A stretch of DNA of 64,000 nt from Guillardia theta CCMP2712 (Eukaryota; Protista; Cryptophyta): assembly GCF_000315625.1 (NCBI RefSeq), contig NW_005434597.1, positions 113,912 through 177,911 of the forward strand, given 5' to 3'. The position numbers were made by a program, and so were the translations under genes. A model generated the notes under the pieces. It was not told the DNA's origin and ran no database searches. It worked only from the letters and a program-made list of their open reading frames with translations. Below, piece after piece: positions 40,401 to 62,837 of the stretch. Numbering within the stretch: position 1 is the first letter of the stretch; the number at the start of each line of letters is the position of its first letter.

Positions 40401-43400
40401 TGATCGCAAGGTCGCTAAATGTTAGTGACGTCGTTCTTCAGCCTGATTACTTTCGGCAACCATCTGTGACATCGGAAAATTTCTCAATCGCTTTTAATGG
40501 GTCCTTGACATTCCGAATGATGACTGTGAAATCGATTCCTACATCAAGTGTGATTGGCGTTATTTTACCGAAAGATTTCAGACTTTCTTGGAAATCTGAG
40601 ATATATTCTCAAATTTACACAAGACTGATCCTTGAGAATTCAACAAACAACACCAGTAATCTTTCATGTTCAAATTACAGTGACTTTGCACAAAATTTGT
40701 CCTGCAGCATGTCCACTAACTACTCTGCTAGCAATCAAACAAATGTTCAAAAAACTCAGGAATTGACGGTGAAAGTACCTTTCAATGGGACCTTCACACT
40801 GAAAACATTAGGATCTTTTCTGCCAACTCTTCAGATTTACCCCTTCTCAGCCCTGCCCTCGGCATTAGTTTTCGTGAATAGCACCATTCCGTCTGAGTCA
40901 GTGTTTGAGTTTGTTCTGACTGACGTGGAATTCCCTTGGTACACCTCGTTAGAAGCGTTGAATTCAAGCGTATTTGTAGCCCAAGCATATTTGAACAAGG
41001 CTTTCATAACTCAGTATTCTACCGGATTCCAGTTACAACCATTGAAACCAGGATTAATATCGCACATTAGGATTCAGTCAGAGTCGTTGTATGCAGCTAA
41101 TTTGTTTGCTGTTAATGTTTCATTCCAAATATCAAACGAAATTCTCAACGGATCTTTCAGGGTACAATTCCCCTCCGACTTTCAAGTTCTTCAATACGAA
41201 AATGTTACCTTTTCAATTTATGTTCAGGACACAGATGTAACAAGTGTTTCGAGAGTATCTTTCTTTGATCGGAGATCACTTGATATCAAGTTTGGAATAA
41301 GAATAATTTCGAATTCGAATGTTCGTCTACATATGAGAAACATTCTTGCATCACAATTTGCAGGATCCATTCATGATCTTTATACTGTGAGTAGTTTGGC
41401 AGCCAATGGATATCTTGTAGATCGAGGTGAATATGTCTGTAAAGGTTGCCCATTGGTCGAGTGCTGTCTAAGACCAGGTGTTTTTACATCTGCTGCTTCT
41501 CCCAAGTCTGCTCTGACAACTGGTTCAAGAAATGTTATTCAGGTCCAGCTTTCAACAGCTTTCAAGTGGTCCAAGAATTCGACTCTGAAAATCTCTCTTC
41601 CGATCCACTATTACAGTTGTGACAATCTTACCCGTGGCGAGCTGCTAATTACTCGTCAAGATGGAACCAATCAGTTTTGCGCCATCTCAGTTACATCCGA
41701 CTTAACAAAATCGTGTGCTCCAAATTACATTTCACCGAATTGTAGTCAATTACAACCATTCTGTTTACCCAATTACAATCATGATGTAGTACAGTCAGTC
41801 CAAGTCAAGCTGTTGGATTCTTGTATAAACTTATCCGATGTGAAGCAGTATACTTTTTCGTTGCAGGTCAGGGCTCCGAGCGCAATCTCAAGGTCCGACT
41901 TCTTTGTCTTTGAGTTTATTGATTCCCAATGTTGGTACAATGATACTTCATTGTGTATCAAAAGCGTAATTGATGCGAGAAACCAGTCGTCTCTGGTTGT
42001 GGAATATTCGAACTTGACATCTCCAAGTTTGGTCCTGTCCAACAATATAAGCAATTTCTCTTGTGACAGCTTGTCTGTACAGTTTCGACCGTATATTCCA
42101 GTGCCTGTGAAAGGATATATTTTCATCGACCTGCCGATAGTACTCACGGTAGACACAAGTCTGCAAAGCAATATCAATCTTTCTGTGGACAATAAATCGG
42201 TCGTTTACGACATGAACAGGAAAGGACAGTCAATTTCACTTCGTCTAATCGACACAGACATCTATCAAAACAGTCTAGTCTCGGTGACATTTCTGTGCAT
42301 TCAAAATAGACTGAGTCAGCTCCGACAAGATGTACTTCAGACAAGAACTGCAGATGAAACATTGAATTTCTTCCAAAGAACATACTTGCCAGGTCCCTTG
42401 TTTTTCTCATTTGACACTCACTAACTTTGTTGCAGTGCTGTTGCAATCGCGGCTGTTAAATGGCGCTATACAAGTTCTTTCGATCTGCACTTGTTCAAAT
42501 TATATGCTGTGCCAAGGATCCTGCATAACTTCTGAAGACCGGGTTCGCATAGCTGGTGTCCAAAGTTATCAGATCAACTTGACAGCACCTCAACAGTTGT
42601 TGAATGGCAAGAACTTTGTGAGTGTAGTACTTCCTGCAAGTTTCGACATCTCCAAGTTTTCATTCATCTCGATGGATGTATGGTGTTCTCTAATTCTCTT
42701 GTCTCCACCTCGTATTTCTTGCAGAATCCTTCGTTCAATACCTTCTTATAGCACTGTTTCCGTTCTACTTGGAAACATCATCAGTCCACTTGCATACGAT
42801 CAGAGTGAGGTTTCAGTGTATCTTGAAGACGCAAACAGATATATCATAGCTGCTTTTTCACACAGGTTTCAGATTTATCCAGGCTTGCTACTCAATTATC
42901 AGGCATTCTTCCACAATTTTCCTTTCCCCGGCAGGAGTGTAACTTTGGATCTATCCTTTAATGCCACGTTCCCCGCTGAAGGATCATTCGTCCTGACCCT
43001 CCCCACGTCAATGTATGTCACAAACGCAACGAACAATTTCAAGCTACTGGCAGGTGGCTGCATCAATCAATACAACTTTACTCCTTGGACCCCCTATTCT
43101 CTTATCTCTTATTTCAAGACAAATAGAACATGCATAGGGCGAGTACATTTCGTCTTTGATGTATTTCTGAAGGAAGTTTCCAATGATACACAAATCTTGA
43201 CATCCATGTTTGAGGGAAATGCATATACTGGATCCTTGCTCGGAGAATTTAGTGCTCCCACAAAATATTTCGGAAAAAGTGTAAATATCAGTGAAATTCA
43301 AATTCAACAAAAGATTGGAAGCTGCTCCGATACGGCGGACTGTTTTGTGATAGTCAAAATATTCAATAGCACATCTCAAAACTTTGTTGTGAGCTTGACT

Positions 43401-46400
43401 GATTTGAATTACACCTTTACAATGCCTGTGACTGCGTGCAGATTTCAAAATTGTAGTTATCCTGCGACCGGAGACTTACAACTCGATTTTGGTTATGGGA
43501 TAGTCGACACCAACTCTTCTCATTTGCAATTTCAGTTCAAATACAATGCCATGAATTCCATGAATGACACAAAGAATCTCAACTCGAACACAATCACGTT
43601 TTGTTTGTACAGAAGCAAGCTATTTGCGGGATGTAGTACTGTAAATATTGAAGGCAAACCTCCAAGCCCTGTCATCACAGACCTTTTGCAAACAGGAGTG
43701 GGAATAGTTCGCATTCAACTTTCTCTGGACGACAACTTCACTTACCTTTCTTTGGAGGCCATCGCCTTGTCTGACAACGGATACCAGACGCGAGAAGTTT
43801 TTCCCTGCTGCAGCATAGGACTTGCGGGTTGCTGTCAGCTGCGAAATGTCGAATTGGGAAATCTTTCAGCTGGACAGGTTCGCTTTGCCCTCATTGCTAA
43901 CGGTCTTGCCGGTGCAAGCCCGATCAGCAATTTCTCTTGGTTCTATGTCATAGGGTTGCCTCCCATACCTCAAAACCTAATAGCAGCTTATGTGCAGAAT
44001 AGTTTTGATTTCAACCTGTCTTGGAATCAGATTCCTTTACAAAGCCCGTACTTTCGCTTTTATGAGCTGAGGATCAATGATACTGTGATCAGTCTGCCAA
44101 TTGAGACTACAAGCTATCTCGTACAGCAAGTAGGAAACATTTCAATCATACCAGGCACAGAATATAATATTTCTCTATCAGTGTCCCTTGCGAACCTGAG
44201 CTTTCCTGTTGGTTATCAATCTAGACAAAGTATCAGCGAATTTTTATCCTTCAAGACCCTGTCATACTTGTCCCCACTACCAATTATTCGGTCTTGCCCA
44301 AGTGGACCATTGTCAATCTTGGTGCAGCTGTATTCTTTCTCCTTCATATCAAAGATTACTGCAGAGGTATACGTTTTCAATGAATCTGATCCCTCCATAC
44401 TGTGCTGTGCACGCAGCACATGTTTGATAGATGCAAGCCAACATCTATGCAGCCAATCATGCCCTACTGCACTCGGTTTGGATTTGCAGCAGAGTGTCGA
44501 AAAATTTACCTTGGTAAAATTTTCTGATGAGTTGAATTGGAACTTTTACAATCTATCTCGAGGCTTTTTGTACACGATCATCTTCACGGCATACAATCAG
44601 ATTTCGAGCGTAAGCAGCAATGTCACGGTGCAGGCGATTGACAGGAATATCCCAGCAATCTCAGGTGTATGGTATAATCTAGTCAACATCTCTGGATCCT
44701 TACAGCTGAATATATCCTGGCATGTACCTACCTACCCGATCGACTTTCATACAGAAATTTTGATGAACTCTCGCCGATCATTCTACCTCCCCGTGATACC
44801 ACAACAAAATTCATCTTATACAGACACTGCAGAACAGCAGTACATTCAAACTTACAATGCAAGTGACTTAGATTATACAACCGTAAACGGGAATCATTTC
44901 ATTGTATATTCCAATAGCTTTCACAGTACAACTCACCCTGCTGAGGTTCTAGATTCAATCCTCTGGCAGGTCAGCTACATCTACATTTACAACAGCAGTG
45001 CTGGAAAATTTGCGGGAGCTTGTGCTCTCAATCAATCTTGCTCCTTGTTCATATCGAGCTCAAACGGCAGTTACATGCAAGCTAATTCAACCATCTCAGA
45101 TAATCTCATTTCGACAGGTGCATACCAAGTATTGAATTCTTTTGGTGCAATCAAATCAAAATTTGTCTTTCTCGACCAAGAATCATATCTAGTGATTGTG
45201 AATTCACTTGTTCCCAAGAGCTACTTTTGTTCGCAAAGGAGTGAGACAGGTATATACGGACTTGCGTGCACAGGAAATCTTACATCAAGCATTGATGATT
45301 GCAAATTGAGTTGTCCACAAGAATGCTTTTGCATGCCAGCATTGAAAGGATCCCTGAGTCCAGAGCAGGTTGGTCGAGCCCCAGAGGTGACGCTCTACAA
45401 GTACAACTCTAACTCATCACTGTTTGAATATCATTCTGTCGTGAATCGATTTGCAGAAGCTCAATCTCGACCTTCTGGTGTGGACTTCTTAGATGTGCAG
45501 CTGTGCAACAATAATCTAAATATATCTTGTCGAGGGAGCACAGAAAATTGCTCTTGCAAGAATGTTTCATTTCTCATAGTAACTGACCAGGTAAACGACT
45601 CTGTTGTTTTCTCGTGGGACTCTAATCTTCAACGATTCATCCTTCACCAAACTCTGCGAGGGATTGGGACGGGGTCGGTGGCATCGGTTCATGCGATTAC
45701 GGCTCATGGAATATTCTTGTTCATCCTTAATCAGGGCCAAGTGAACAACACTTCAACAGCGTCGGCTGTGTACAAGTTGAATGGGACCGAATTCATCCGT
45801 GTGTCTTCCTTCCCATCCTACCAGGCTAGTGGCATTTCCCATTTCGCTGTGGGAACCTCTGATTACATTGTTGTATCTAATGGTGGATTGAATTCATCGG
45901 TTGGAAAGAAGTGTACAGGAGTTGTATGTCGAGGCAATCATTGCGCTTGTGATGGCACGGCTGCAGCATGTAATGTTGATGCCTGCCCCATTGTTTATCG
46001 TCTTGAGAATGATTCTCTGATGTATCTCCAAACTTTACAAGTTGCCGATGCGACCTCGGTGGAAACTTTCCATGTAAGGGACTCAGCTTTCGAAACAAAT
46101 CGTGACTACATCATATTTTCAACGAGTCTTGGAGAAGGCTCAGGCGCCGTATACTCGGAAATTTTTATATGGAATACTACTCTGCAGCAGTTTTCTCCAT
46201 TGATCACGTTTTTCAGCGGGCAAGTCACTAGATGGCGGGTGTTTGTGATGGATCAAGCCGTATATTTTGCATCTGCGATTCGTAAACAGTCGAGCCTCAG
46301 CACAGCTTCGTGTCAAGCTCTGAATGGGCTGTGTGCAGTGACCAACAGCATCTGCTTTCATCCCTACGATGGCTCCCCTTGCATTTCCGAAACATGGGCG

Positions 46401-49400
46401 ATGTTTCCACCACAAGACAAGCTTTTTGCCGCACTTTCACCCATCCTCAGGACTGACTCCTGGCCTGCTTATCAACTAGTCTCCATCTTGAATACAAGCT
46501 CGAACTATGCGGTGAAATATCGCCTTGAAGTTGGAGAGGAGTACTCCCTACAACTTCGTGGAGTGAATCTGTTGGGACAAGGCCCGTTATCTTCACCCGT
46601 AGTTTTCACCGCAAAAAAGCTTCCAGAGGCTCGATGGCTTCCTGCAACATACTATCCGAATTTTCAGTTTCAGCTCCATTGGTTTCCGCCAAATTATGAT
46701 CCAGAAATTTCAATCTTGGAGTATAGACTTCAACTGTTTCTGAACTGTGCAGACCAAAGTACTTCGTACAACGCTGTGGCATGTTTACTTGGGGTGAAGC
46801 CGACGTCATGTTGCAGACTTGGAGAGACGTACTATCTTGGAAACGTCACTTCATACCTTCTGTTCCTTTACAACGTAGACATCCATCAAAGAGTAGACTT
46901 GTACCTCTACCCTGTTTTTCAAACTACTCAATATCCCTATATTCAGTATGGGGCCCCTGCTGTAAGCAGTATTTTCACGGTCACGCAGCCGTCAGGGGTG
47001 AGAAACCTAGAAGTTGGTTCAGCTTATGGACGGAATAGAATATTTAGCGGATGGCAGTCTCCTGTGGACTTCGGCATTGGCCAAGATGATCCATTGCATT
47101 TCTCAAAGCAGTATAATCTCATTTTCTTTTACAATCTGACTGTAATTGGTAGTGATGGTACAGAACATGTCCAATGTGTTGCATTAGACGGAACTGGATG
47201 TGATTGTGGAAATCTGCAGAGTTGTTTCCAGGCTGTGCAATTTTTTGTAAATGTACAATTGATTTCTCCTTCACAACAAGGAATATTGAGCTCAGAAATA
47301 GCATATTCCATAAAGGTTTCTATGAAAGTGTCGAATTTTGATGGTATTTTGCTGTTTGATACACCAGTGGCTGAAGGAAGCGTTTGTGCTGAAGAATTCC
47401 CTCTAAGTCCGACCAGCTTATCCGTGAGTAACGACGGGACCGGTAGCTTCACTGCTCATTGGATAGCAGAAGTTAACGGTCCATGTGGAAAGAATTTTAT
47501 TAGCAATTTCCTTCTGCAAGTATCGGACCATGATTACTTTTATCCTATTTATGACCAATATAATTTCACAGATCTCAGTAGCGAGTGTGGAATACTTGGG
47601 CAAGTGACAGGAATATATATATCTTGGCAAGAGCGCACATGGCACTCCCCAGGGTTTGTGGATGGGCACCAGTATCATTTCCGAATCTTTTCACAAAATC
47701 CTTCTGGCACCAGCCTCCCTTCCAACATAGTTTCTATTTTCAAGAGAAATACTCTACCCATAGCTTCTTTTGGAATTCCAGGCACTGAAGTGATCTACCC
47801 AGAGAGCGTATCGCTTCGCTTTACAGTTTGCTTCCCAGAAAATTTTTCAATCCCATACTTGCATGTAAAAGCTTGTCCAATTTCGCTTTGTACTCAGCCT
47901 CTCTACCTACGAATCTGGGTTCAGCAGAATTGTTCTGAATATCGAGTTCTATTTCCAAATCTTGTGAAAGGGACTTTTTACAAGTTTGATATTGTAGGAC
48001 CTTACAAGAGGCCCAGCGATGTTTATTCCAAAACGATCTATGAAAGGAGTGTCGGGCTACCTGGATTGATTGACCCGAACTCTGTGATTGTCTCCAATCC
48101 CTTTGGGAAATCTGGAAGTCTGGAGCTCTCCTGGCTCCCACCTGTGGAGAAAGGGTTGGGCAAGGGAAATGATTTCTTGTTGGTAAATTATTCTGTTTCC
48201 ATGTATACTTCTTTGGACAAACCTCCAAATCAAACAATCATTGTCAGTGCTGTTTACAATGTTTCAGAGCAAATACTCAGTGCAGGTTACAATTTATCAG
48301 AGCAAAATGCGCAAACTGGCACTTCTGAATACACTTCTCAAGGAGTCCTTGATCCAAGATTACGAATCTACTTTAAACTTCCTGTGAATATTTCGGGATT
48401 CAGCGATTCTTACACCAACAATATGAGCCTCTCTGGTAATGGATCCCGTCTGATGAACAAGCATTTTCTGTCTCTAATCGTTGATGGTTTGCTTCCAGGG
48501 CAGACTTATTTTTTCACAATCTCTGCCTCCAATTTCCTCGGGTATGGACCTTCAGTGGGTGTCAAAGGCGAGATATTTGGGAGGCCCAGGTTTCATCCAC
48601 AAGCTCCATCACGTTTCAACGTCGATGGAATGAACGATGCTTTCAGTATGACATGGCATCTAGATCGCATCACCCAAAACTATAGATACCTTGAAACTGT
48701 CTCAGCATTCACACTACAGGTTGAAAATGGTCCTGTCATCAACAATTACACCATTTCCAATCGGACATTTCGATACGGCCTTACTCTTCCTAGAAAGAAC
48801 AAGACCGAACAATTTTGTTTTTCCATGTTTGCTTACAATGAAGTGGGGCGAAGTCCGTCATCCCAAAGAATTTGCTTTAATTCTTCAAATTTTACTGTTT
48901 CAAACTACAACATCTCGAAAGTCTGTAATTACACTGGATGTTTCATAGTTTGGCCGGACTTTCTGAATGTGGAAGCTGGTACGTTGTATGGAGTAGAATT
49001 GGAGTATTGCAGAAAACCATATCCATGGAATTCCTTCGGTAGGTCACCATGGTGTGACACAGAGTTCATTTCTGAGTCATCGTGCAACTTCTCGAATTGC
49101 GCGACAAATCTCTACGGCATATCCCTAGGAGCTTCATTTCCTGTGCGCTATCGGATTTGGAAAAGTGTTTCAAACCTTGGAGTCGAGAGGATTTCTAGTG
49201 AATGGATAAGTGATACACTTTTCTTTGATCCGCTTAACAGCGGAAGTGTAATTTTTACAGGCGTTTCTTTGCAACAAGCATCCCAGAATGCTGTACCACA
49301 ACTCAAGTTGATCGTTGTCGTGAAAAACGTGAGATTCTCTCTCAACACTTCTTTCTTAAAATTGGTGTCAAAGAAGAATTCGTCCAACAGCCTTATTTTA

Positions 49401-52400
49401 AATTCGTCTTCTGTTTCTATACAGGGTAAGACTTTTGACTGGACCCTTTCGACCATCACTTCGATACTTTTACTGAACAGATCTGATTTGGACAATCAGT
49501 ACGTGGGGTTTGTTGGAGACAGTCAAAACGGTTCAGGGGATGCTGTGTATGATTATTTGACGTTTCCATTACGTATCGATTATCCACTCACATATATATC
49601 TTCCATTCATCCATCTGAAGGATTGTTTTATGGGTTTGGAGTCCTCATCGTTGTGCGGGGTGATATTCAATGGAAATCCACTTACCATGTGTACTCCTTG
49701 GATGGATCTACTCAATCTACCCAGATGGACTTGAATGCAAACGATGAGGGGTATGCGGCGTTTTCATTCTTCTCCCCTATGCTGCCTGTTGAATGCGGAC
49801 AATCGTCTGTTACAAAGAGCTTTGTTATCGATGAATTGAGTCTTGAGTTTTCCTTGAAATATCACTCTAGTTGTTCAATGTTTGCATCAAACTTTGTCCC
49901 CAAACAAATGCAGCTCTATAAGCATATTCGTGCAAACTTCTCTTTGTTTAATTACCATAAGAACATTTCAAGCTTCAAAGATTGCAACCTCACTTTTGTC
50001 AACAACTCTATTCTTTGGAAACAGTTTACAAATGTGAGCTTCAATGGAAATGTTGCGGATTGCTGTGGCATGTTGGTAAATCAGAATCGAAGCGAAATCT
50101 TAATGGAATGTCAAATTCCTCCGCTAAAGCATTTTGAGAGTGAGGTTCAAATTGCTATTGATTCTGTGGTCCTGACCAAATTGCCGACTGTCGGGGAGGT
50201 GTTAGTATCTCGTCCATACTTGTCATCCAGTGCATTAGATTTTGATAATTTTGCCAAATTTCTTTATGTACCGGACTACAGAAAGCAGGCAAGCGGGCCA
50301 ATAACGGTCAATGCAACTTTGAACCACTTGGTCATGGAGATAGAAGGGTTTGGAACAGACTTTGCTGGAGTGACAGATTTTGATGTCAGATTTTCATGCA
50401 CAGAGCTTGGATACACCATTAATACCTTTAACCTATCCCTCGTCTTTCAGACAAGCTCAAGAGTACGGCTCACGGGTGCGGTAGACTTCACGAGAACCCA
50501 AGCATGTCTGTACACATTTGCCGTGTCCATTCATGGGTACCTTGCTTCATCTTTGCAGGATTCAGTATTCGTGTTTGGTCCGTCATTCCAGCTGGCAAGG
50601 CCAAACACGTGCATGCCTGCAGTGGTTCGACGGATAGAACCATCCTCTGTCATGTGCAACTATATGCAGAAGGTGGCAGTATTTCTCGAAAATTTTCCAC
50701 AACATTACGATCTATCTGATGTGCACATATCTATCAGAAATCAGACGATGGATTTTGTATTGACGCAGCAGTCATCAGGCATTTCAGTATTTACCATAAC
50801 TGTTCAGTATGTGATTTGTGGATACCAAACTATCAAAATATCAATGCTTTCCCGAAATTGTACTTTCTCGACGTATAGCACCTTGTTTCTTGAGGATCCA
50901 ACCTTGCAAAGCTTTTTGACCGTGGAACCATCCTTCATATACTCACAGAACCAATCGAGTAAAATTTCCCTCAGGTTTGGGTACACATGGACCTCAAGGC
51001 CAGCCGAGTTTCAAATCTTTGTGGGGTCCGAGCGAGTGCAGGACTTTCAGCCAAGCTTGAGTGGCTCTGAAGTCACCCTTGAAGTTTCGATTCCTCCGTT
51101 GAAGGGAGGGCTCAATGTATCGCACATCGTCCTGGTCTCAACAGAAGATGGCTGGACGTACGTGGGGGAGTTGCGAGTGTTGGCCAATCCTCCCGTCCAA
51201 TGCAACATTTGGTCTCTCACAAGCCTTGGGAATCACACTTATTATGCTGTCATCTCTGACCTGCCAGTTGTCACTAATTCCTCCTCCCTTGAAGCATTCA
51301 TTGAAGGCTCCACCAACGGAAGGTCGATTCATGTGTGGGTTGAGGAGAGCTCAATTGTAAGCAATCCCTACACTACCTCGCTGTTGTTTCACGTCAACCT
51401 TGACTATAAGGGCGCACCCACCTCGAACAAGACATACGTGAACTCATTCCCTGCGTTTACCTTGCGGTACAAAGAGCACTTTTGTAAAAGCAACATCAGT
51501 ATAGACATTCCTTCAATGTATGTTATGTCAGCAGTTCACAACGTAAGTTGTTCTTCCGACGAAGCAATTCTGACTGTCAGACACATGCCATTCGTAAATT
51601 CCTTGTATGAAGTCATTGTCTTGAATGCAGCAGGAGATATTTTTGTGCCGAATAATTTGTGGCATGACATGTATGATGCGTCCATTACCTATCTTCAAAT
51701 TCTGCAAGGAATCGCATCGTCAAACAGCATGTTTCATCTGAAAATAAATGGATCGGAAATGTACTCGACATCTTTTCAATCGCAACCTTCGAACAACCTC
51801 TGTGCTGTATATAGGGCTCCTGGGCCGTTTCAGAAGCTAAAGCAAGTCCTTCCCTCGATTGGACCGGCTTCGGGGGGATACCATGTGGCCTTGATGTTCG
51901 AAGGTTCCATTCCTAGACAAGACATCATTCCGAGGGTTTGGTTTGGCAGTACGGAGGCTCAAGTGGTCAACATCTCCTTGCACATGGATGGAAATTTCAT
52001 CATGACGGTTGTTTCGCCTCGTCAAACATCTGTCGGTCTGATAGATCTCAACATATTGCTTCAAGACCAGCGCTTGCAATCACAATTGATACGTAAAAAC
52101 TTCATCTATACCGAAGCTATTACAATGCACGTGATAGCTATCGAGCCTTCCGAAGGTAGGCAATATCAGCCTCTGATTGTACAGATATTTTTGCGAAACA
52201 TTGTAGATACGTCGATAGAGAAATACAGCGTTGTTTTCGGAGAACGGGTTCAGCTCATTCAGAACATAACCTTAATGGCAGAAGACCGAGCAACTTTAAC
52301 CTGCGAAATAGTGCCTTTTTACCCTGAGCTTCAGGTTGGAACAATATATTTCTATGATACTTCCATTCAATCATCATCGGAGTTTTCCTTTCTTGTCAAA

Positions 52401-55400
52401 CCTCATAGCTACATCGAACAACTCGTGCCAAGCACGTCAGTCTCGTACACTTGGACTAAAGTGAGTGTTTTTGCTGAGAACTTTCCATGGGGCACGCTTC
52501 AACTTGATTCCTTGATGGCTCGTGTTGGCGATGGGTTCGTGTATGTCGAGAGTGCCTTGAACATGTCTGAGAGTAAGGCCCTCTTTCAAATCTCGACGCC
52601 TCCTCGTCCCTGCACATTTGAGCTTTGCAAGAGTACTTTGAGTATTGTATCCAGGGATCAGCCTGAGATCTCAATAATTTCTTCTTATCATTACTATGAA
52701 AGCTCCATACCAATAATAGTTGAAATTTCACCCAAGCGCTTGTATTCATCAATGTCCGGAGTTCCAATCTTCGTTACTCTCAGGAATTTTCATTACACAA
52801 GCAATATTGCAGAGCTCAAAGTTTGGTCTCTTCACAACCTATTCACTCTATCAGAAATTTTCTACTCTGATCCCTACACAACCACTTTGAGGCTCAATTT
52901 CTCGTTGGGTAACAATACCATCCAGAGAGAAGAATTGTTCATCCTGCACAAACTATTCTCTGGTATGTTTGTTTCAGCTTTGATCGACATCTATATTCCT
53001 TTGCCCACCATTCTTTCTGTCTATCCAAAAGAGATCTGGAAAGACCAGGAAACTACCGTTGTTCTCATGGTAGAGAACTATCCATACTCCACATCATTCA
53101 TGTTGAGAAATTTTGTATATGAACGCGTGCGGTCGCCAATCCAACCAAGAATATCACTAGGAAGTGTCGTGATATCAAAGTATGACATTTACGAGATCAG
53201 TCAAGGATTCAATAACACTGTCCAACTTTCCTTCACGGTGTTGTTTTCCGCACTGGGACCAAACACCATTCAGATCTCCCACTTTCAAAACCCTTTTGAG
53301 AGCATAACTTCGTTTGATGTGTTCGTGAAAGATTCGAGTGAAGTCTTGTTTAAAAGCTCGGAAGCGTTTACAGTTTTGAGCTGTTGCTCAAAGCTACTCT
53401 TGGATGTTGTCAATGCAGTCCATGCTGCTTCATCTACAGCAATTTTGAACAACAATTATGTTCCATTGTCAACGTTAAAAAATTATGGAGAATATTCCAC
53501 AATTCAACTTGACCTTCCGACAGTGCCAAATGCAGGGATTCACGTGTTGACAATCCTGTCATTCCCACAGATAACACAGGCATCGCTTATCGCAAGGGAG
53601 ATTCCTTTGATCTACATCCAGGGGTGCGACTTGCACTCCTTCTGCACATCTTGGGATATGGTAGTAGGATTGAATGTCAAGACGCTAATTGAACCTTTGT
53701 CTAATTGTGATATCCAATATTGCGATGTTCCTTCAAAGATTCCTGAGCTCAGGATTCTGAGTGTTGAGAAAAGCTATGGTGTAGTGCAAGAAGCGTTTTA
53801 CAACAAGATTGTGGTTGAGAACCTGATTTACATCACTAAAGCAGATGTGTGGGTGAGATGTAATGAGTTGAATATACCCATCGTTCAGGTCTCAGAATTG
53901 CTGGATCAGCGGACTTCTGTGATCTTGCAATATCCTCCTTATCCAGCTAGTCAGACACTCGAATGTTTCATTTCTTCCCAGATTGACATTGAGAGGTCTG
54001 CGTCATTCTCTGTCAACCTTCTTTCGATTTCAGATTTGAACAAGATTACGCTATTACCGTCGCCATGCATTGCAAATGCCCTCACAACCTTTACAGTCTA
54101 CATCGAACACTGGATCTCGTTTGTTCCAGACAGAAAGATTGTCGTGAGTGAGATAAACCATACGCAAGTCATAGAAGCATGGTATGATTATGGTACTCTG
54201 ATAAAACTTCAGTTTGAGTGGTACTGCAGCAATTCCACAATCAATATCTCCCAGAATGGCTCGCATGAACAATTATCCGTCAATCTGCAGGCAATTAAAC
54301 CATATGTGGTTTCGATCTTTCCTAGTGTCGGGCCGGCTGTTACGGAGACAGTTGTTTACCTGACATTGGCATTTCAGAGCGCTTGGATGCCAGCCGTCCA
54401 TCTCAATAGTTCTTATAATCAAAGCTTCACAAATCTGACTGCGATCTCTACAGCTCAAAATGGAATTTTTCTCCAAGTAAGCTTCAAGATGCCGAAGATT
54501 GTTCTTGCTGATGGTTTGTTGTCTGACTCATGGAGAATATTCCTTGAATTCAAACAGGAGAATGAAATCTTCGAGACTCAATTCCTCGTGCAAGACATCA
54601 ATAAGATACCGATCTTTCAAACCATGTCCGATCCCAGTGGAAAAGAGGAGATTCTTTTGTACATGAATGGACCTCGTGACCTTGTAGAAAAGTATTTGGT
54701 GTATGTAGTTGGAAATCAAAATGAGTCAATCTTAGAATTCATACCTATGGGCTCTCAGTATTTCTTCCGTCTTCCAGTTGTCAATTACACCCATTTGAAT
54801 GACCCGGTACCTGTTCAAATTTATGACAGTGCTCAAGCGCTGAACTTAGCTTACTTTGTGTATAAACCAAGGTTTGCCAGTCTGTTGAGTGTCATTCCAA
54901 GCTCTGTGATCATCAATAGAGTTGTCACGGTTACGTTGAACGTCAGCAGTCTTTTCTACGTCTCGAATCGTACGGGCACATTGAGGATACTTGTCGGCAA
55001 TGAAATGGCTCCGGATTGGAAGGTCATCACCTCCGATCATTATTACACCACTCTCAATGTAAGCGTCCCTCCTCTGTCGAATGTTGCCTCAACCTCGGTC
55101 ACCGTTGAAGATTTATTGACGCGACAGTCGTGGTCTACGGAATTCTTAGTAATGGCTGCACCCAAAGTAGTAGAAGTTATTCCGTCTAGAGGTCCAGAAT
55201 CTGGGTTTCAAGTGACGGTGACTGGACAGTACTTTCCCGAAGTCTACGACACTCGAAACGTACAGATACAATGTTCCAACAAGCAAGGGAGAGTGGAAAA
55301 GGTCTTTTGGTCCACCATCTGGTTCACAGCCATATTGGACACTCCCTTGTTGACAGGAAACACCCGAACGAGTTGCAGTTTGTTGCTTCATGGTGGTGTG

Positions 55401-58400
55401 ATCGATCGTTTCAACCTAAGCATATACCAGAACCCCACCGAGCTGTTGAGATCTGATCAAACCGTAGCGATCAATAATACGCTTAGAATTGACCTTGATG
55501 TTCAGAACGCTCCAGAGAGCTCAGCAAATGCCATACTTCAATTGCAAGTATTGAACTCTCAAATGCAGTTGTTGGGTGGCGCAAAGATTCTATCATATGT
55601 TGCTGAAAGCCTGGCGATAGAGCTTCCTCCATTAGACTCCGGGCACTACATTTTGTATTCAAGGCAGCTTAACGCAAGGAATTTACTTCCCTTCGTCGTT
55701 CCAGACCCGTCATCTCCATCCATTACAAGAGTGAATCAAGATGTCGGCTACTCCTTCATTCTGACCCTGAATGGAGCTCCTATTTCAAATGAGTACATTG
55801 TGAAGTGGTCGAATGTGTATGGCACTGTATTAGAAGCAAAACAAGTGAATACTCAAACAAGTTTACATTTATACTTTCCTGCCAGACCTTCCCTTGATAT
55901 TTCTGGAAGTGTATTCGAAGTGTGTTCGAGGCTACAACCAAAATTCCATTACATCATTGGCTATGTTTGGAATAATTGTTTTACCAAACAAGCTGTTCTA
56001 GATGCCCATTTCACAACCATTCATCTTGAAATCTCAGAGGAATGCAAATACGTGGGGTTATCTTCTGATTGCCTCACCCTGTTCGACTTGGATTCGCAGA
56101 TTAGCTTCGGCTCTGGAAGTAAATGTCTCATGGATAATGCTCATACCTTGACAGTCTACCTCGGCTTGGATTCTTCCATTTTGCCTGGACACAAGGGAAA
56201 GCTGTTCGAATATTTGCCACCTATTGCAGACCTGGATGTTGTACAAGTTCCTATTGACTTCGTGGTGACCACAGAAGGTGTTGTCCTGCCGCCTGTTGGA
56301 GAGTTGTGGGGTTCTACTGTCATAGGACCGAATGACATGGCATCCATTGGTTTTGTCGGCCCTTCAATGCGCATTCTTCAGTATGAATGGAGGTTCATAC
56401 CATCATTCAACACTAGTAGTAGCTCACTGCAAGCAACGTTCAACACTTTAATTGGAATTCATGAGTCGACGCTATCAGTGCCAGCATTTCTCCTTGGATC
56501 AGCATTAGAATACATCTTTGAGTTACGAGTGACAAACTTTCATAACAGAAGCAGTTTGTTCCGACATTCTTTGCGTGTCGTTCCGCTGTTTTTTCCAAGT
56601 TTAATTTTGCAGTATCCTTCAATAGCTCAAAATTCAACGAAAGTTGATGTGATCGCAAAGTCATCATGTCAGGGATATAGCTGTATCTTACAGACCCAGA
56701 AGTTGAACTCAATGTCGTTTGTTGTGGAGGAACTTCTGTACCCAATGCACAAGAAATTCTTCTACTCCAATGAAACACTGACATTTCCTTCAGACGGTTC
56801 AATTGCCAATGAGTACAGGATCAAACAAGGAGGGCTGTTCACAATTGATTGGTCTCATTTCGGTTCTATCGATCTCAAACAAGAGGGTGCAAGTGTGCTG
56901 CCTCGGAACTTTGTTAGAAATGGGTATCCGGTGCTAGTCGATGGCAATGGTACTCTGATTCGACTGGAGCTTTGGTATAAATTTGATCTTGCAACTGGCA
57001 TGGTCAATGACTCCAGTGGAAATGATTTCAATGCATCGCTTAGTTACGGCATGAAATATTCAACTCAAGGAATCAAAGGAACGAATTCTGCCATCTTCCA
57101 GACTTCGTTGGATTCGTCTTTGCAAATTTCGATTGACTTGGATCTTCAGCAAAATGTGGGTTACTCCATTGCTGTTTGGATCATGTTCACAGTAAAGTCT
57201 GGGAGAAACAGTGTAGCAATCAACTTCGGGAATGAAGCTGGGACTAGCAGGTTCATCATTGGCAGGTATGAAGACTCTCAGTACCTCATCTTCGGGCTGT
57301 TCTCGGGAAACCGATCCGTGCTGAACCTTACTTCCTTTCCGGGGATAGATGACCAGTGGCATCACTACGTTTTGTCCCTTCTCCCCGGAGCAGAACCCTC
57401 AGGAAACAACTCCGTGACATTATGGATAGATGGGAACGAATATTTCACCTCTCGGACGGTCCCCGAATATGTCAACTTACTTTCAGGTTCCCCAAGGACG
57501 TGGTTCCTAGGCAAGCCTGCACGGTGGACTGACATGTCGTTTGACGGACAAATGGACGACTTGCGTTTGTATAGGCAGCCATTGACCAACTCGCAAGTGA
57601 ATATACTCTTCTACGGGAACTTGTATCATCTCCGCTACTTCTACACAAACCAATCAAACATTGTTGTCAGCAATATTGGAATCTCTCGCCTTCCTGGTTC
57701 CACTGTAGATCAAGAATCATTCCTTGCTTCACTTTCGTCTTCAATCGCTACATCTAGGATAGAGTTCAACTCCACTAGCTCACAATTCGCAGTGAACAGC
57801 TCAAGAATTGCCACGAATCTCAGCTACAGTGCTGAAAGTTATGACTTTCAAGTAGGAATAAGCCGAGCATACTCGCCCTTGTCCTTTCAGCTACCGGGAA
57901 AGATCCGAGTACTGCCAGCAGATGCCCATGCAATCATCCGTGTTGACAAGCCATTGGCTACATCAAAGCATATCATCTTGAACGGCTCACTTTCATATGA
58001 TTCTCAAACGGGTCCGAGCTCTGTTGATTACAATCTCGAATGGAAATGCTTTGAACAATTCTCAAAGTGTCTATTCATGAACGCTCCTTATTCTGGAGCA
58101 GTTTTGAACATATCAACGTTGGCTTTACAACCTAATACACGATATGAATTCGAGTTGCGCGTCAGTACTTCTGATGGCAGAGAATCAAGTTGCTTCGTCG
58201 AAATTCTTGCTGACAGCAATCGCGGTTTGCAATTCTTCACGATCAGCCGAGTGAATTTGAGTGAAGTGTGGGATCGATTCGAAGGCAACGTGAGCATCAT
58301 TCTTGTCGACTCTCAACATCCCGTGCTGAGCCTCAAGGAAGTAGGATACTTCCCTCCTCTACACGAGATGGCCAACTTGATCTCCTTTTCATCATTGCAG

Positions 58401-60554
58401 GCCAACATCGCTTCATTCAAGCTGCCTTTCATCGACGGATATCAAATACAGGTGAAACCTATGAGGTATCGACTTCCCGGACTCCTTACTTCTCTACTTT
58501 TCCTTGATAAATCTCTTACTCAATTGCGACGAGGTGTGTGCAACATTTATGAGGATTCATTCTATATTTCAAACCTCACCGTCCCTGTTTCTGGCATTGC
58601 TGTCGAATGCTCTTCTTTCTATTCCCGAGACGTGCCTTTGACCTACAAGTTTGCCGCTGATCTGAATGGAAAGCAAATGAGCTTCTTGCGCACCTTCGAA
58701 CCCACTTTGGTGTGGTACATCTTTCCTTCAGGAAATCTGCAAATGACTGTCACTGTACAAGATTCCAAGGGTGCAATCCAGCAAGTGAAAACAAACCGTG
58801 TAGCAATCAATGGCTCAAGAACTTTGATAGACATCTCTAGCTACTCAAGCACATTCATTATGGACTTTTGGCTGGTCTCACAGGATTATCAATCTACATT
58901 ACAATACATCTTTGTCGCATGCATTCAAGGGTTGAACTCTGATTCTCTAACAGTCGTGTTACAGTCTTTGAAAGGAATTGCTGGCGTCCTCATTCAGTCC
59001 AATTCCTTTGATCTTGCAGTGTTGGAAGCACTGAATCTTGTTATTGAAACTCAACAAGCATTTGGGATGATTCACTACCAACTTCTTTTAGACTTGTTAA
59101 AGGGAATTTCATATTCTTCTGTGTTGGGCGGTGTTATCACGTTTCAAAATGCTGAGTTGGTGGGAAACATCAGTTCTCAACTTGTTCGACTTAGTCAAAA
59201 ATCTGCTCAGAATCCTGACATTCAGAAATATATTTTGAATGCTGCCATTTTGTTCTTGCAAACTTGCTTCTCCGTGTTAAATTACAGTGATTTAGTCATG
59301 AGTCCATTGTGTAGTTACAGCCCCACAGTCACGACTTGTGTGAGGAATTTGTTTTTTCAAAGCGATTCAGTGATAGACATTGCGCAAGACCAAAAAGCCT
59401 CCATCACGCTGACACAGGAGGTGAACGCGTTCCTGGTCTTCAATTACTTGCCCAACACACAAGGCATGCCAGGATCCATCGTGTCAGGGTTGCTTACGTT
59501 GTCTCTCGTTGACGACAAGGTTACAGGCGCCTGCTCCACCTCTCCTTGTTACTTCGAGCTTGAACTACCAGCCGATGTCTCGCACCTCCCGCCCTCTATG
59601 CAGGATCAGTTCTTTGCTGGTACAGGAGCTGTCTGCGGCACTTGGAACAAGGCAACGGGAGGTGCTTCTTCCAGCAACTGCAATCTCATCTCAACGACGA
59701 GAAGTTTGAACATGTGGGGTGAAAGCACGGGCTACGGTACAGTCAAGTGCATGTGCCGCCTCCAGGATGGAACATTTGCTGCTATCATAAACGCCTCGCA
59801 TACTAAATTTGTTGCTCCGTCGCCCATATCCAACGATGTCTACATGTTGCATTCGGGCAGCAATCTTGCTGTCGACTTGTTCGTTCAGTCCGTGGGGATT
59901 CCAATCATTCACGTGATGGACAACATGGCGCAGGTTGCAATCTCTCCCGAGAAATCCGTCGTTGTGAAAGACTGTGGGTGCTCGTTGTATCAATTCAGGT
60001 ACACAAACTTTCAGTTAAAGACTCAGAATTTTTCTCTAGCCTTCTACCTGATCGATGGCAATGCCACCAGGGAAACCATCTCGCTCTTCGTGCAAGTTCT
60101 CTTCTGCCAGGATGTACTTCTCCCCGGGCAGAACGTGATCGACTTGGCGCAGAGACACCACTTAGATTGGCAAGCTCTTCTTACCCTCAACTCTGAGATC
60201 CTGAACCCCAAAGAGATTTATTTACAGCCACCACGAAGGCTGTGGACCTGCTCAGAAACTTTGCAAGACTGGGGCCACTGTAAGCTCGAAGGGCTCACGG
60301 GGTTTGCCATCTTGCGCATAGGAAAGATCCACCGCATCCATGCTGAGAGACTGCTAGGAGTCATTCACAGCTACCGAGCCTCGTTCACACAAATTGTGAA
60401 GAATAACGTTGGTCGTCTTGGCATCAGTAAGAACATCACAGACTTCTCATCGTATGAATCAATGGTTTTGAATTCAACAATTGCCAACAACATAGCACCT
60501 GAAGGTGAAGAAGTTTGTATCGTCTCTGACTTATCAGATGTTTGTTACGTTTAG
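25439..60554 (+). CDS. Giant (~11,670 aa) secreted multidomain protein, polycystin-1/REJ-GPS-like ectodomain ending in LysM-like domains; exons 25439-28430, 28485-42392, 42436-60554
   Basis: ORFs of 1009, 4614 and 6047 aa join in frame via introns 28431-28484 (GT..CTGAC..GCAG) and 42393-42435 (GT..CTAAC..GCAG). Exon sum 2992+13908+18119 = 35,019 nt = 11,673 codons including the stop. Signal peptide MLLLYILASLLLFHAQPA. Domain motifs are listed in the findings. Confidence 0.88.
28431..28484 (+). other. Intron 1 of the giant gene (54 nt, phase 1)
   Basis: CAG|GTGATG...CTGAC...TTGCAG|G. It removes the in-frame stop at 28466-28468 and restores an open frame into the 28580 ORF. Confidence 0.85.
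42393..42435 (+). other. Intron 2 of the giant gene (43 nt, phase 1)
   Basis: CAG|GTCCC...CTAAC...TTGCAG|TG. Removal shifts exactly from the ORF2 frame to the ORF3 frame (YLP-V-LLQSR). Confidence 0.88.
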
Positions 60555-60621
60555 CTTTGGATAAAAGTTGTTGTTTCGGTGTTCGTGAATAAAAGCTAAA
60601 TCAACCCAAGTCGTCAGCAGG

Positions 60622-60679
60622 TGCTACTCTGTCGCTTAATCATACTTTCATGCTACTCTGTCGCTTAATCATACTTTCA
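60622..60679. repeat. Perfect 29-bp tandem duplication (TGCTACTCTGTCGCTTAATCATACTTTCA) x2 just 3' of the giant gene
   Basis: Two identical adjacent copies at 60622-60650 and 60651-60679. Confidence 0.92.
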
Positions 60680-60897
60680 ATATCAAACAAGTGATCTAAT
60701 TCATAATCATCCGAATAGAGCATTGGTAGTCTACACGTTTAGAGATACACTGTTGTAAATGACAAAGTTTAAGTTAATACTTGACACCCAAACTACAACT
60801 GCGCACAACTTCCTTGTCTACAAATCTAAATCCATGAGAAATCTTCACGTTGACCGCACTTCTTGCAACTCCTCGAAGCAAGACTGATCGCATTCAT

Positions 60898-62106
60898 CTA
60901 TTGAGCTCCCTTCCTACGCTTCACATTAGCTTCTGCAGTCTCCACTGAGCGCTCTTCAGGCGCCCGAGCTTCGGAGGGAGGAGGAGCAGGTGTAGCCTCA
61001 GTGGAAGATGCGGCTTGCTCAGGTTTGACTGAGGAGGGAGGAGGAGGGGCTGTCTTGTCATCTGCAGAACTTTGTCCGGGTCGAGTGCCTTCTACTTTGC
61101 CCTCTCGATTGGACGACTGACCAGCAGCTGAAACTTGAGGTTCTGCGGTAGATGAAGGATCCGACCGGACTGGTTCTGAAGAAGGGCCAGGAGCAGTGAC
61201 AGTGGCCGACGTAAGAGTAGACTCTGATGCTTCTGCCACACTGGCAGCACTGGCACCTTCAGCTGCTGTCGAAGAACCACACTCCTTGCATGCTGTGCGC
61301 ACCTTCCCATGCTGACAGATACTGGAGCCTCCACAATCTTTGCAACGGTTTCGTTCCTTCCCATGCTGGCAGATGCTGTTGCCTCCGCACTCCTTGCATC
61401 TTGAACGAATCCGACGATGTGGACAGATGCTGGAACCTCCACACTCCTTGCACCTTGCACGCTCCCTTCCATGATTACACAAGCTTGAGCCACCGCACTC
61501 CTTACACAGCGAACGTCTTTTGTTGTGCTTGCAGATACTTGATCCGCCACAGTCTTTACAAGAAGCTCGCTGTCTGTTATGCTGGCATATGCTCGTGCCC
61601 CCACATTCCTTGCATAGCGAGCGTCGCTTTGAGTGTTTGCAAATGCTGGACCCTCCACAGATCTTGCATTGAGAGCGCCTTCTATTGTGTTCGCAAAGAC
61701 TGGAACCTCCACATTCTCTACACCTTGAGCGTCGTTTACCATGCGTACATATGCTTGATCCTCCGCAATCTTTGCAACGTGCACGAATCCTCCCGTGTTC
61801 ACAGACAGACAGCTGTTTCTTCCGCGGCTTTCCTTTGCCGTCCACATCCATCTCAGAAGATCCCTCTTGGTTTCCTTGCACACTCTTGGCATTTGGGGAT
61901 GCTATCGTAAGGATGTCCGCCACAGTATCGGGTACCTGATCCTCTTTTACGTTCATGGCGGCAGCGGCGGGAGTGGCGGCGGTGCTGGGAGGAGCATTAG
62001 CCCCCTGCGAAGCAGCTGACGGCAAAGTTGTCTGCAAAGCAGGTGCGGAGCAATCAACCGTCTTGGGAGGGTCTGTCTGAACCTTGTTGTCCATCTCCAC
62101 CTGCAT
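60898..62106 (-). CDS. Protein with ten tandem 18-aa C-x-H-x6-C-x2-C-GGSS[IL] putative zinc-binding repeats, flanked by disordered regions; single long exon
   Basis: Repeats such as CEHGRIRARCKDCGGSSI occur x10 at ~61270-61803. First ATG at 62106 (the ORF opens at GTG 62157). Basic patches KPRKK and KRRK suggest nuclear localisation. Confidence 0.85.
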   Translation of the reverse strand: MQVEMDNKVQTDPPKTVDCSAPALQTTLPSAASQGANAPPSTAATPAAAAMNVKEDQVPDTVADILTIASPNAKSVQGNQEGSSEMDVDGKGKPRKKQLSVCEHGRIRARCKDCGGSSICTHGKRRSRCRECGGSSLCEHNRRRSQCKICGGSSICKHSKRRSLCKECGGTSICQHNRQRASCKDCGGSSICKHNKRRSLCKECGGSSLCNHGRERARCKECGGSSICPHRRIRSRCKECGGNSICQHGKERNRCKDCGGSSICQHGKVRTACKECGSSTAAEGASAASVAEASESTLTSATVTAPGPSSEPVRSDPSSTAEPQVSAAGQSSNREGKVEGTRPGQSSADDKTAPPPPSSVKPEQAASSTEATPAPPPSEARAPEERSVETAEANVKRRKGAQ

Positions 62107-62194
62107 AGCGCTTTGCCCAGCGAGTATGGAAGTGCAAAGTCCTAGAAAGCCCTTCACACCAACCCTTGTTGTTTATGTGATTGAATACCGTCCT

Positions 62195-62240
62195 CTCGCT
62201 CCTCGCTCCTCGCTCTCGCTCCTCGCTCCTCGCTCCTCGT
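62195..62240. repeat. (CTCGCTC)n heptamer repeat
   Basis: About six imperfect copies visible. Confidence 0.75.
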
Positions 62241-62837
62241 TCTCTTACTTATATCCTCCTCTCTTCCTACTTCCTCCTCCTCCTCCTCCTCCTCTGCCTC
62301 TCTCCGTCTAGTCTGCTGCCCTGCCTGGTCTACCCGGTCCTCGGCGACGTATGCTTCCTCTCCGCCAAGGTAGAACGATTGCCCGTTATAAATTCACCCA
62401 CCAGATTCAGCGTTTTCATAAATCAGTATAAACCAGGGGTACATGAATACATTATATTATACGCATGTTTCTGTCACAGTTACTTACTAAATACTTAACT
62501 ATAGCTTTAGAAATGCTAATTTGTTTATTAATTTTCAAATTTTAGTATTCTATTTTCTATTTCATGTTTCATTTTGAACCATGCTGCCAAATTCTCAATT
62601 TTTCTTTTTTGGATCTCTTGTCGCGGTGTTCGCTTGGCAACCAGACGGAGGGGTCGGTATGAGGGTCTAGGTGGTTTTAGGATCTTTATTGGACAGCTCC
62701 TAGGATGCTGTATGTGTCTATGGCTGGGTCCTAGGATAGGTCTAGGAAAGTACCATGGAAGGAGCTGGTCCCTTGCAATACGTTACATCTACGTTACATA
62801 TCTGTTGCATCCGGCGGCGGGTCGCCCGGCCGCGCGC

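Follow-up and report, generated by a model that had tools for sequence, protein, structure and literature searches.

A predicted giant protein of the cryptophyte Guillardia theta ends in a REJ-GAIN module followed by Ig-like and LysM domains, with no transmembrane helix after the GPS

Introduction

In the paper that introduced the GAIN domain, all eukaryotic examples analyzed immediately precede a transmembrane helix (PMC3321182), and the tethered-agonist and mechanosensing models of GAIN function build on this adjacency. Prokaryotic surface proteins of the MAIN (microbial GAIN-like) class are arranged in the order of signal peptide, adhesion or enzyme domains, GAIN-like MAIN domain, and wall anchor (bioRxiv 10.64898/2026.05.12.724683); LysM is absent from the main text of that preprint. 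Here, we describe a giant gene of the cryptophyte Guillardia theta CCMP2712 that lies on the forward strand of a 64,000-nucleotide (nt) stretch of contig NW_005434597.1 (assembly GCF_000315625.1, positions 113,912 to 177,911), hereafter the window, in whose coordinates all positions below are given. The last part of its product, the window protein, is a cassette of a REJ domain, a GAIN domain (helical subdomain A and GPS), an Ig-like domain, a LysM domain, and a degenerate LysM-like unit, after which the gene stops.

Since this REJ-GAIN-LysM-stop arrangement belongs to a conserved and expressed eukaryotic family, it breaks the rule, drawn from PMC3321182, that a GAIN domain stands before a transmembrane helix. 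In the searched literature, no paper brings the term "GAIN domain" together with either LysM or Guillardia, and nothing relevant was found on Guillardia together with LysM or on REJ in cryptophytes. Our overall reading, to which we give an even chance, is that the gene encodes a secreted, non-membrane giant protein ending in a REJ-GAIN-Ig-LysM cassette whose tail is a putative glycan anchor.

Results

An initial annotation of this DNA had proposed that REJ-like motifs, a helical region, and a GPS-like motif are followed by LysM-like units, and this architecture was borne out by a Pfam match for REJ, an AlphaFold2 (AF2) model for GAIN, the family alignment, and, for LysM, a profile match to Ecp6 and hhalign comparisons. 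All the motifs it quoted were found in the frame of the open reading frame (ORF) at 42411 to 60554 (forward strand, as are all features below unless noted): YEWRF at 56382, YIFELRVTNF at 56511, IILNGSLSYDS at 57972, YNLEWKC at 58029, YEFELRVST at 58143, VTVQDSKGA at 58749, CGTWNKATGG at 59634, TVKCMC at 59739, VLLPGQNV at 60114, and IAPEGEEVCIV at 60492. The REJ domain, at 57801 to 58781, was recognized by Pfam (PF02010, E 7.9e-11, 41.6 bits, cut-off 25). Only 57801 to 58217 (residues 614 to 752 of the last 1,530) and profile positions 48 to 200 of 452 are matched, and the REJ region probably extends to the VTVQDSKGA motif. Upstream of it lies a Laminin_G_3 domain, a concanavalin-like lectin, at 57120 to 57599 (residues 387 to 546 in the same numbering; PF13385, E 7.1e-15, 55.9 bits). 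The first two motifs, YEWRF and YIFELRVTNF, which had also been taken as REJ-like, fall in a REJ/PKD-like unit at 56376 to 56576 that gave just a weak, sub-threshold Pfam REJ match (E 0.072, 12.1 bits) and aligned with the second unit by BLASTP at E 0.023.

When the last 1,000 residues were searched exhaustively with HMMER against 1.84 billion representative proteins, only 15 proteins matched, and a family-profile search for homologous proteins added just one new fragment. The best homologue is a Hanusia phi protein of 5,676 residues (62% identity) that ends just past the GPS; a 136-residue Hanusia fragment spans the tail at 81%, and a fragment from Rhodomonas salina matches as well. The remaining homologues are metagenomic, measure 296 to at least 1,979 residues, and aligned all the way from the GPS through the C-terminus, with one of them continuing a 3,479-residue TIG and REJ product on the same contig. 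A metagenome scan supplied 8 more loci, 7 of which carry C-x-C-(N/T)-H-L-T-x-F-A about 260 residues ahead of a stop codon that directly follows a conserved C..VS..D.C ending. In the relatives, the REJ match covers nearly the full profile, with E values from 1e-17 to 5e-31 (same Pfam cut-off of 25 bits). Judged by these alignments, the cassette of REJ, GAIN/GPS, Ig-like, LysM, LysM-like unit, and stop is conserved and always terminal in at least 7 mutually divergent relatives, and its sharing by cryptophytes and marine metagenomes speaks against a one-off loss of an anchor. The tail contains five conserved Cys residues. Between the window protein and Hanusia, the linker, second LysM-like unit, and C-terminal end are 86% identical (97 residues), compared with 60 to 73% for LamG, REJ, and GAIN, and, judged by this identity, no part of the last 1,500 residues is more constrained than the extreme C-terminus.

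One family member, P0030 (in the cluster of P0014), comes from a 1,850-nt contig and is listed as an incomplete protein in the metagenome-assembled genome of a "Promethearchaeia archaeon" (MGB1595782.1); the contig is probably eukaryotic and mis-binned.

Downstream of REJ, a helical segment with eight predicted helices at 58836 to 59273 resembles GAIN subdomain A, and subdomain B, including the GPS motif at 59634 to 59798, occupies 59310 to 59798. The AF2 model of 58809 to 60551 (m991fa03978fc, 581 residues) had a mean predicted local distance difference test (pLDDT) score of 61.5 and comprised the eight helices (residues 10 to 155) followed by a beta domain. Three of its four best structure matches were GAIN structures, those to BAI3 and BAI2 spanning model residues 1 to 330, and Foldseek with the GAIN model matched BAI3 (4dlo) at E 3e-5. 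When the 581-residue model was used in a wide VIA-align structure search, helical repeats dominated the results, and a profile of the GAIN region gave no significant match to PDB sequences, with ADGRE5 and BAI3 aligning in register at E 2.8 and E 5.5, respectively. As modeled, 58836 to 59798 has the makeup of a GAIN fold, i.e., a helical subdomain A and a beta subdomain B ending in the GPS strand. In the family alignment (A4), C276, W279, C291, C314, and C316 of the GPS are invariant; the window protein carries these four Cys, the Trp, and the C-x-C, which qualify it by sequence as a GPS motif, and the second Trp is missing. Pfam found no GPS in the tail of the window protein alone. The GPS of its relatives scored 25.1 to 26.4 bits against a cut-off of 22.5 bits, and it is because the aligned family passes the Pfam cut-offs that both the GPS and the LysM of the window protein are convincing.

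GAIN autoproteolysis needs a His base and a Ser or Thr nucleophile. At the cleavage site, the relatives read C-x-C-N-H-L-T-x-F-A-V, with H-L-T or H-M-S as the triad, whereas the window protein reads C-M-C-R-L-Q-D-G-T-F-A-A and Hanusia reads C-M-C-R-L-E-D-G-T-Y-A-A. The alignment places Q-D-G of the window protein, and E-D-G of Hanusia, at the H-L-T positions, where an H-x-S/T triad is lacking. Self-cleavage of the window protein is unlikely because H-L-T is replaced by Q-D-G; many of the HLT relatives, by the same motif, probably do self-cleave. It has been reported that a Thr-to-Gly mutant of latrophilin still folds (PMC3321182), and we infer that the GAIN domain of the window protein would fold without cleaving itself. 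Of the GPS-like motif described initially, the invariant Cys/Trp pattern thus stands and the catalytic triad is gone.

No membrane anchor was recognized behind the GPS. After nt 54882, no 19-residue stretch had a mean Kyte-Doolittle hydropathy above 1.5, the post-GPS tail reaching at most 1.47 within an Asp-containing beta strand, and a glycosylphosphatidylinositol tail was rejected, the last 15 residues not being hydrophobic; on both counts the initial annotation, which had seen neither type of anchor, was correct. The last 1,890 residues contain no Pfam match to PLAT or to an 11-transmembrane, channel-like part and no hydrophobic helices, and no seven-transmembrane (7TM) domain was found after GAIN by Pfam, hydropathy, or the transcript end. 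The GAIN/GPS is followed by about 250 residues of Ig and LysM units and then the stop. The description of the module as polycystin-1-like is therefore apt for REJ-GAIN and inapt for the PLAT domain, the 11 transmembrane helices, and the channel part, all absent.

The 3' end of the transcript was defined by sequence and RNA reads: the stop codon TAG at 60552 to 60554 is followed by a 3' untranslated region with AATAAA at 60588 to 60593 and a poly(A) site at approximately 60609. In a 3'-biased RNA-seq run from 2026 (X23), depth peaked at 60298 to 60685, and 25 reads carried non-templated A runs behind 60609, which is 16 nt after AATAAA and 55 nt after the stop; internal priming is excluded because the genome reads GTCGTC there. 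Transcript contigs from two other runs stop at 60607 and 60606, and a 6,420-nt contig ending at 60607 is colinear with the genome, without gaps, from 57000 across REJ, GPS, and tail. Among the RNA reads and transcript contigs at the locus, no joint or onward splicing past 60554 was seen, and the next transcript downstream (60737 to 62259) is on the opposite strand. Splicing past 60554 into transmembrane-encoding exons, the event that the initial annotation had named as fatal to its proposal, is largely excluded by the poly(A) site at 60609 and the colinear contig without an onward splice.

The same data bear on the possibility that the architecture is a gene-model artefact, with the protein running on into downstream transmembrane exons or the tail being a separate gene. 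A 209-residue protein, P0032, which begins at an internal Met and has the same sequence as the tail from there on (59925 to 60554), is recorded as a separately called gene in a protein collection and in the ESM Atlas, as the artefact would have it. Against this, the ORF runs without interruption from 42411 to 60554, the 6,420-nt contig joins REJ, GPS, and tail and leads to polyadenylation after AATAAA with no joints, the next transcript is antisense, and the relatives stop at the same point; the artefact is largely refuted, and we regard it as highly improbable. From P0032 it follows that at least one gene caller severed the tail from the giant gene, and the REJ-GPS-LysM architecture may escape databases.

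Two 1-nt differences, a deletion and an insertion in a C run, set a low-depth 2011 DNA contig (X16, 5.9x) apart from the window at 59348 and 59822. Combined, the two would change the reading frame over the GPS; a transcript contig of depth 49 has neither, and they are probably sequencing errors.

The tail begins with an Ig/filamin-like beta sandwich of about 100 residues (59805 to 60101), and relatives gave a sub-threshold Filamin-like match between GPS and LysM (Pfam cut-off 26.9 bits). The proposal that LysM takes the place of transmembrane helices was right in that LysM lies behind the GPS, but it overlooked this intervening domain. LysM domain 1, with the order beta-alpha-alpha-beta, was located at 60108 to 60251 by family profile, hhalign, and model. 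In the library of 1.84 billion proteins, the last 1,000 residues matched P0013, a protein with six LysM repeats, at E 1.2e-5, and comparison of LysM1 with the P0013 repeats by hhalign gave 97.5% probability and E 8e-12. The family profile matched Ecp6 (4b8v, E 8.4e-5) and SafA (E 0.067); the matches are in register and take in the Cys pair that follows. LysM1 of aligned relatives scored 28.7 and 23.3 bits, above the Pfam cut-off of 20.9 (PF01476), and the relatives carry the signatures G-[DEQ]-[TS]-L and N-P-x-I-x-N-P. A chance resemblance to LysM is ruled out by the P0013 match, the relatives' Pfam scores, the Ecp6 profile match, and hhalign. In the model of the tail (pLDDT 74.7, predicted template modeling score 0.74), residues 103 to 150 formed strand-helix-helix-strand at pLDDT of approximately 85 to 90, so that LysM1 has the beta-alpha-alpha-beta fold as predicted. 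When this model was used in Foldseek, VIA, and atlas searches, Ig domains filled the lists, and the LysM fold received no structural match of its own. For the poor tail model in the ESM Atlas (pLDDT 0.41), 10 of the 10 listed neighbors carry LysM at a TM-score of approximately 0.3, which we take as a lead only.

A second, degenerate LysM-like unit was placed at 60324 to 60521 from the secondary structure of the model, with the conserved C..VS..D.C end following. Model residues 175 to 240 read strand-helix-helix-loop-strand, the loop being of low confidence and about 35 residues long; it is this predicted beta-alpha-alpha-beta pattern that mainly makes the unit LysM-like, short of proof. The degeneracy of this unit and the non-canonical residues of LysM1 in the window protein would also suit a LysM-type fold co-opted for protein docking, in which the tail binds a membrane partner, e.g., a PKD2-like channel or another receptor, and the pair would be a split polycystin-like sensor with no covalent anchor in the membrane. 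The five conserved Cys and the highly conserved extreme C-terminus suggest a specific interface, as docking would demand; however, LysM1 of the relatives passes the Pfam cut-off and shares its signatures with sugar-binding LysM domains such as those of Ecp6 and SafA, and we consider docking quite unlikely.

The cassette closes a gene that extends from 25439 to 60554 and has about 11,672 codons in three exons (25439 to 28430, 28485 to 42392, and 42436 to 60554), corresponding to three long ORFs at 25439 to 28468, 28580 to 42424, and 42411 to 60554. Splice sites were read from the sequence: the first intron (28431 to 28484, 54 nt, GT-AG) holds an in-frame stop, and the second (42393 to 42435, 43 nt, GT-AG) brings the frame back. 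Pfam matches upstream of the cassette are sparse, i.e., Gly_rich_2 near the N-terminus (27065 to 27829, ORF residues 543 to 797, E 1.8e-14), fn3, weak TIG, and weak EPTP; the ectodomain is long and largely unclassified, with Gly-rich, FN3, TIG-like, and LamG parts.

At the N-terminus (25439 to 25525), inspection by eye and hydropathy identified a signal-peptide-like segment with the hydrophobic core LLLYILASLLLF, followed by AQPA and then F. With its short core and A-x-P-A site, it looks like a cleavable signal peptide, and this affects how the protein may be oriented. In a reversed orientation, the LysM tail would be a capturing or sensing tip for bacterial peptidoglycan or chitin particles, the protein being attached to the cell through its N-terminal part or other domains, and it would serve as a prey, epibiont, or pattern-recognition tether and not as a self-anchor. 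LysM homology is compatible with such a tip, and the N-terminal hydrophobic segment could serve as a signal anchor. Its resemblance to a cleavable signal peptide points the other way, as does the position of the anchor C-terminal to GAIN in all known GAIN and MAIN proteins, and we find this orientation unlikely.

Predicted cleavage after AQPA (25439 to 25540) would put Phe at position +1, as in cryptophyte bipartite plastid-targeting leaders. This is probably a coincidence; the residues downstream include Asp, Glu, and Cys, and the protein has 11,672 residues. The G+C content is 40 to 45% across the whole 35-kb gene and 55 to 60% in both flanks. The Hanusia orthologue and the absence of viral relatives argue against a recent foreign origin, a scan of viral contigs having found no relative of the cassette and hence no sign of descent from a giant virus.

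The convergent neighbor on the reverse strand (60737 to 62259; ORF 60898 to 62157, 419 residues) has no Pfam match, and in two runs the contigs have alternative joints at its internal repeats (about 61380 to 61713). Between the two genes, just past the poly(A) site, lies a perfect 29-nt tandem duplication (60622 to 60679).

Discussion

We propose that the Ig-LysM-LysM' tail acts as a non-covalent anchor to a polymer containing N-acetylglucosamine (GlcNAc), which may lie either on the alga's own surface coat or on bacteria or chitin particles. The tail would take the part played by the first transmembrane helix in polycystin-1 and adhesion GPCRs (G protein-coupled receptors), or by sortase, SLH, and wall-binding domains in MAIN proteins. 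Where relatives retain the full C-x-C-x-H-L-T-x-F-A, the GAIN domain would cleave itself, leaving the huge N-terminal part held non-covalently on a small anchored tail, and the cleaved domain may be a force-sensitive release point. In the window protein and its Hanusia orthologue, with Q-D-G and E-D-G, the GAIN domain would most likely be an uncleaved, rigid connector. LysM homology, conservation of the tail, and the analogy with MAIN proteins make glycan anchoring, or binding to bacteria or to the cell's own glycans, plausible.

Several observations weigh against this reading. LysM1 of the window protein, taken alone, scored 13.5 bits (E 0.073), below the Pfam cut-off of 20.9, and has G-Q-N in place of the usual G-D-T. 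The second LysM unit, which the initial annotation had called degenerate, keeps the predicted fold pattern and aligns in register, but hhalign assigned it 8% probability with non-significant E values of 0.004 and 0.0017. GAIN subdomain B was modeled with low confidence (pLDDT below 50 for model residues 154 to 245), and whole-domain GAIN superpositions had a large root mean square deviation (14.8). Both upstream introns, and hence the single product of 11,672 residues, are read from splice consensus. The signal peptide is a prediction, and should the segment stay uncleaved as a signal anchor, the N-terminus would be tethered. Lastly, we know of no GlcNAc polymer on the cryptophyte periplast.

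With natural HLT variants competent for cleavage and natural QDG variants that are cleavage-dead, the family can serve to test whether a GAIN domain that has no receptor works as a mechanical fuse or as a scaffold. It also points to a GlcNAc-type ligand on the cryptophyte surface or on bacterial partners of the alga. More tentatively, and with more doubt than confidence, we suggest that eukaryotic GAIN domains also work off membranes: cryptophytes would hold giant secreted adhesins on a glycan matrix through Ig-LysM-LysM', HLT members shedding their ectodomain under force, as proposed for MAIN, and cleavage-dead members serving as permanent tethers. In that case, the cassette would represent a eukaryotic counterpart of wall-anchored prokaryotic MAIN proteins, or an evolutionary bridge between these and the membrane-anchored polycystin and adhesion GPCR proteins.

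How does the window protein compare with described systems? Like the polycystin-1 family (PKD1, PKDREJ, and the sea-urchin REJ proteins), it closes a very large extracellular region with REJ and then GAIN/GPS, and has Ig/PKD-like, TIG-like, and lectin-like modules upstream; unlike that family, it has no transmembrane helices, PLAT domain, channel-like part, or cleavage triad, and about 250 residues replace the first transmembrane helix. With the GAIN domains of adhesion GPCRs (BAI3, 4dlo; BAI2, 8oek; CELSR1, 8vy2) it shares the fold of subdomains A and B and the Cys/Trp pattern of the GPS, and its relatives carry C-x-C-x-H-L-T-x-F-A, but with no 7TM domain a tethered agonist would have no receptor to act on, and the GAIN domain does not sit beside the membrane. 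Because transmembrane, PLAT, and 7TM features were looked for and not found, the window protein stands outside both groups, with the REJ-GAIN module in common.

Its tail recalls LysM effectors and receptors (Ecp6, 4b8v; SafA, 7r1l; and the ectodomains of plant CEBiP and LYK), which share the beta-alpha-alpha-beta signature and the N-P-x-I-x-N-P subclass motif, and in Ecp6 cysteines flank LysM as they do here. In contrast to these, the LysM of the window protein sits on a giant REJ-GAIN protein, its degenerate second unit contains a long insertion, and sugar binding is putative.

By analogy, the nearest working counterpart is the bacterial and archaeal MAIN class. MAIN surface proteins, e.g., YfkN of B. 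subtilis, likewise combine, in the same order, a signal peptide, a large adhesion part, a GAIN-type domain, and a non-membrane anchor. The analogy is functional only: the window protein is eukaryotic, has a eukaryotic GPS signature and REJ, uses an Ig plus LysM cassette instead of sortase or SLH, and, from its Q-D-G, is unlikely to undergo autoproteolysis. For the relatives with an intact HLT, the likeness suggests that the same logic of release under force may apply.

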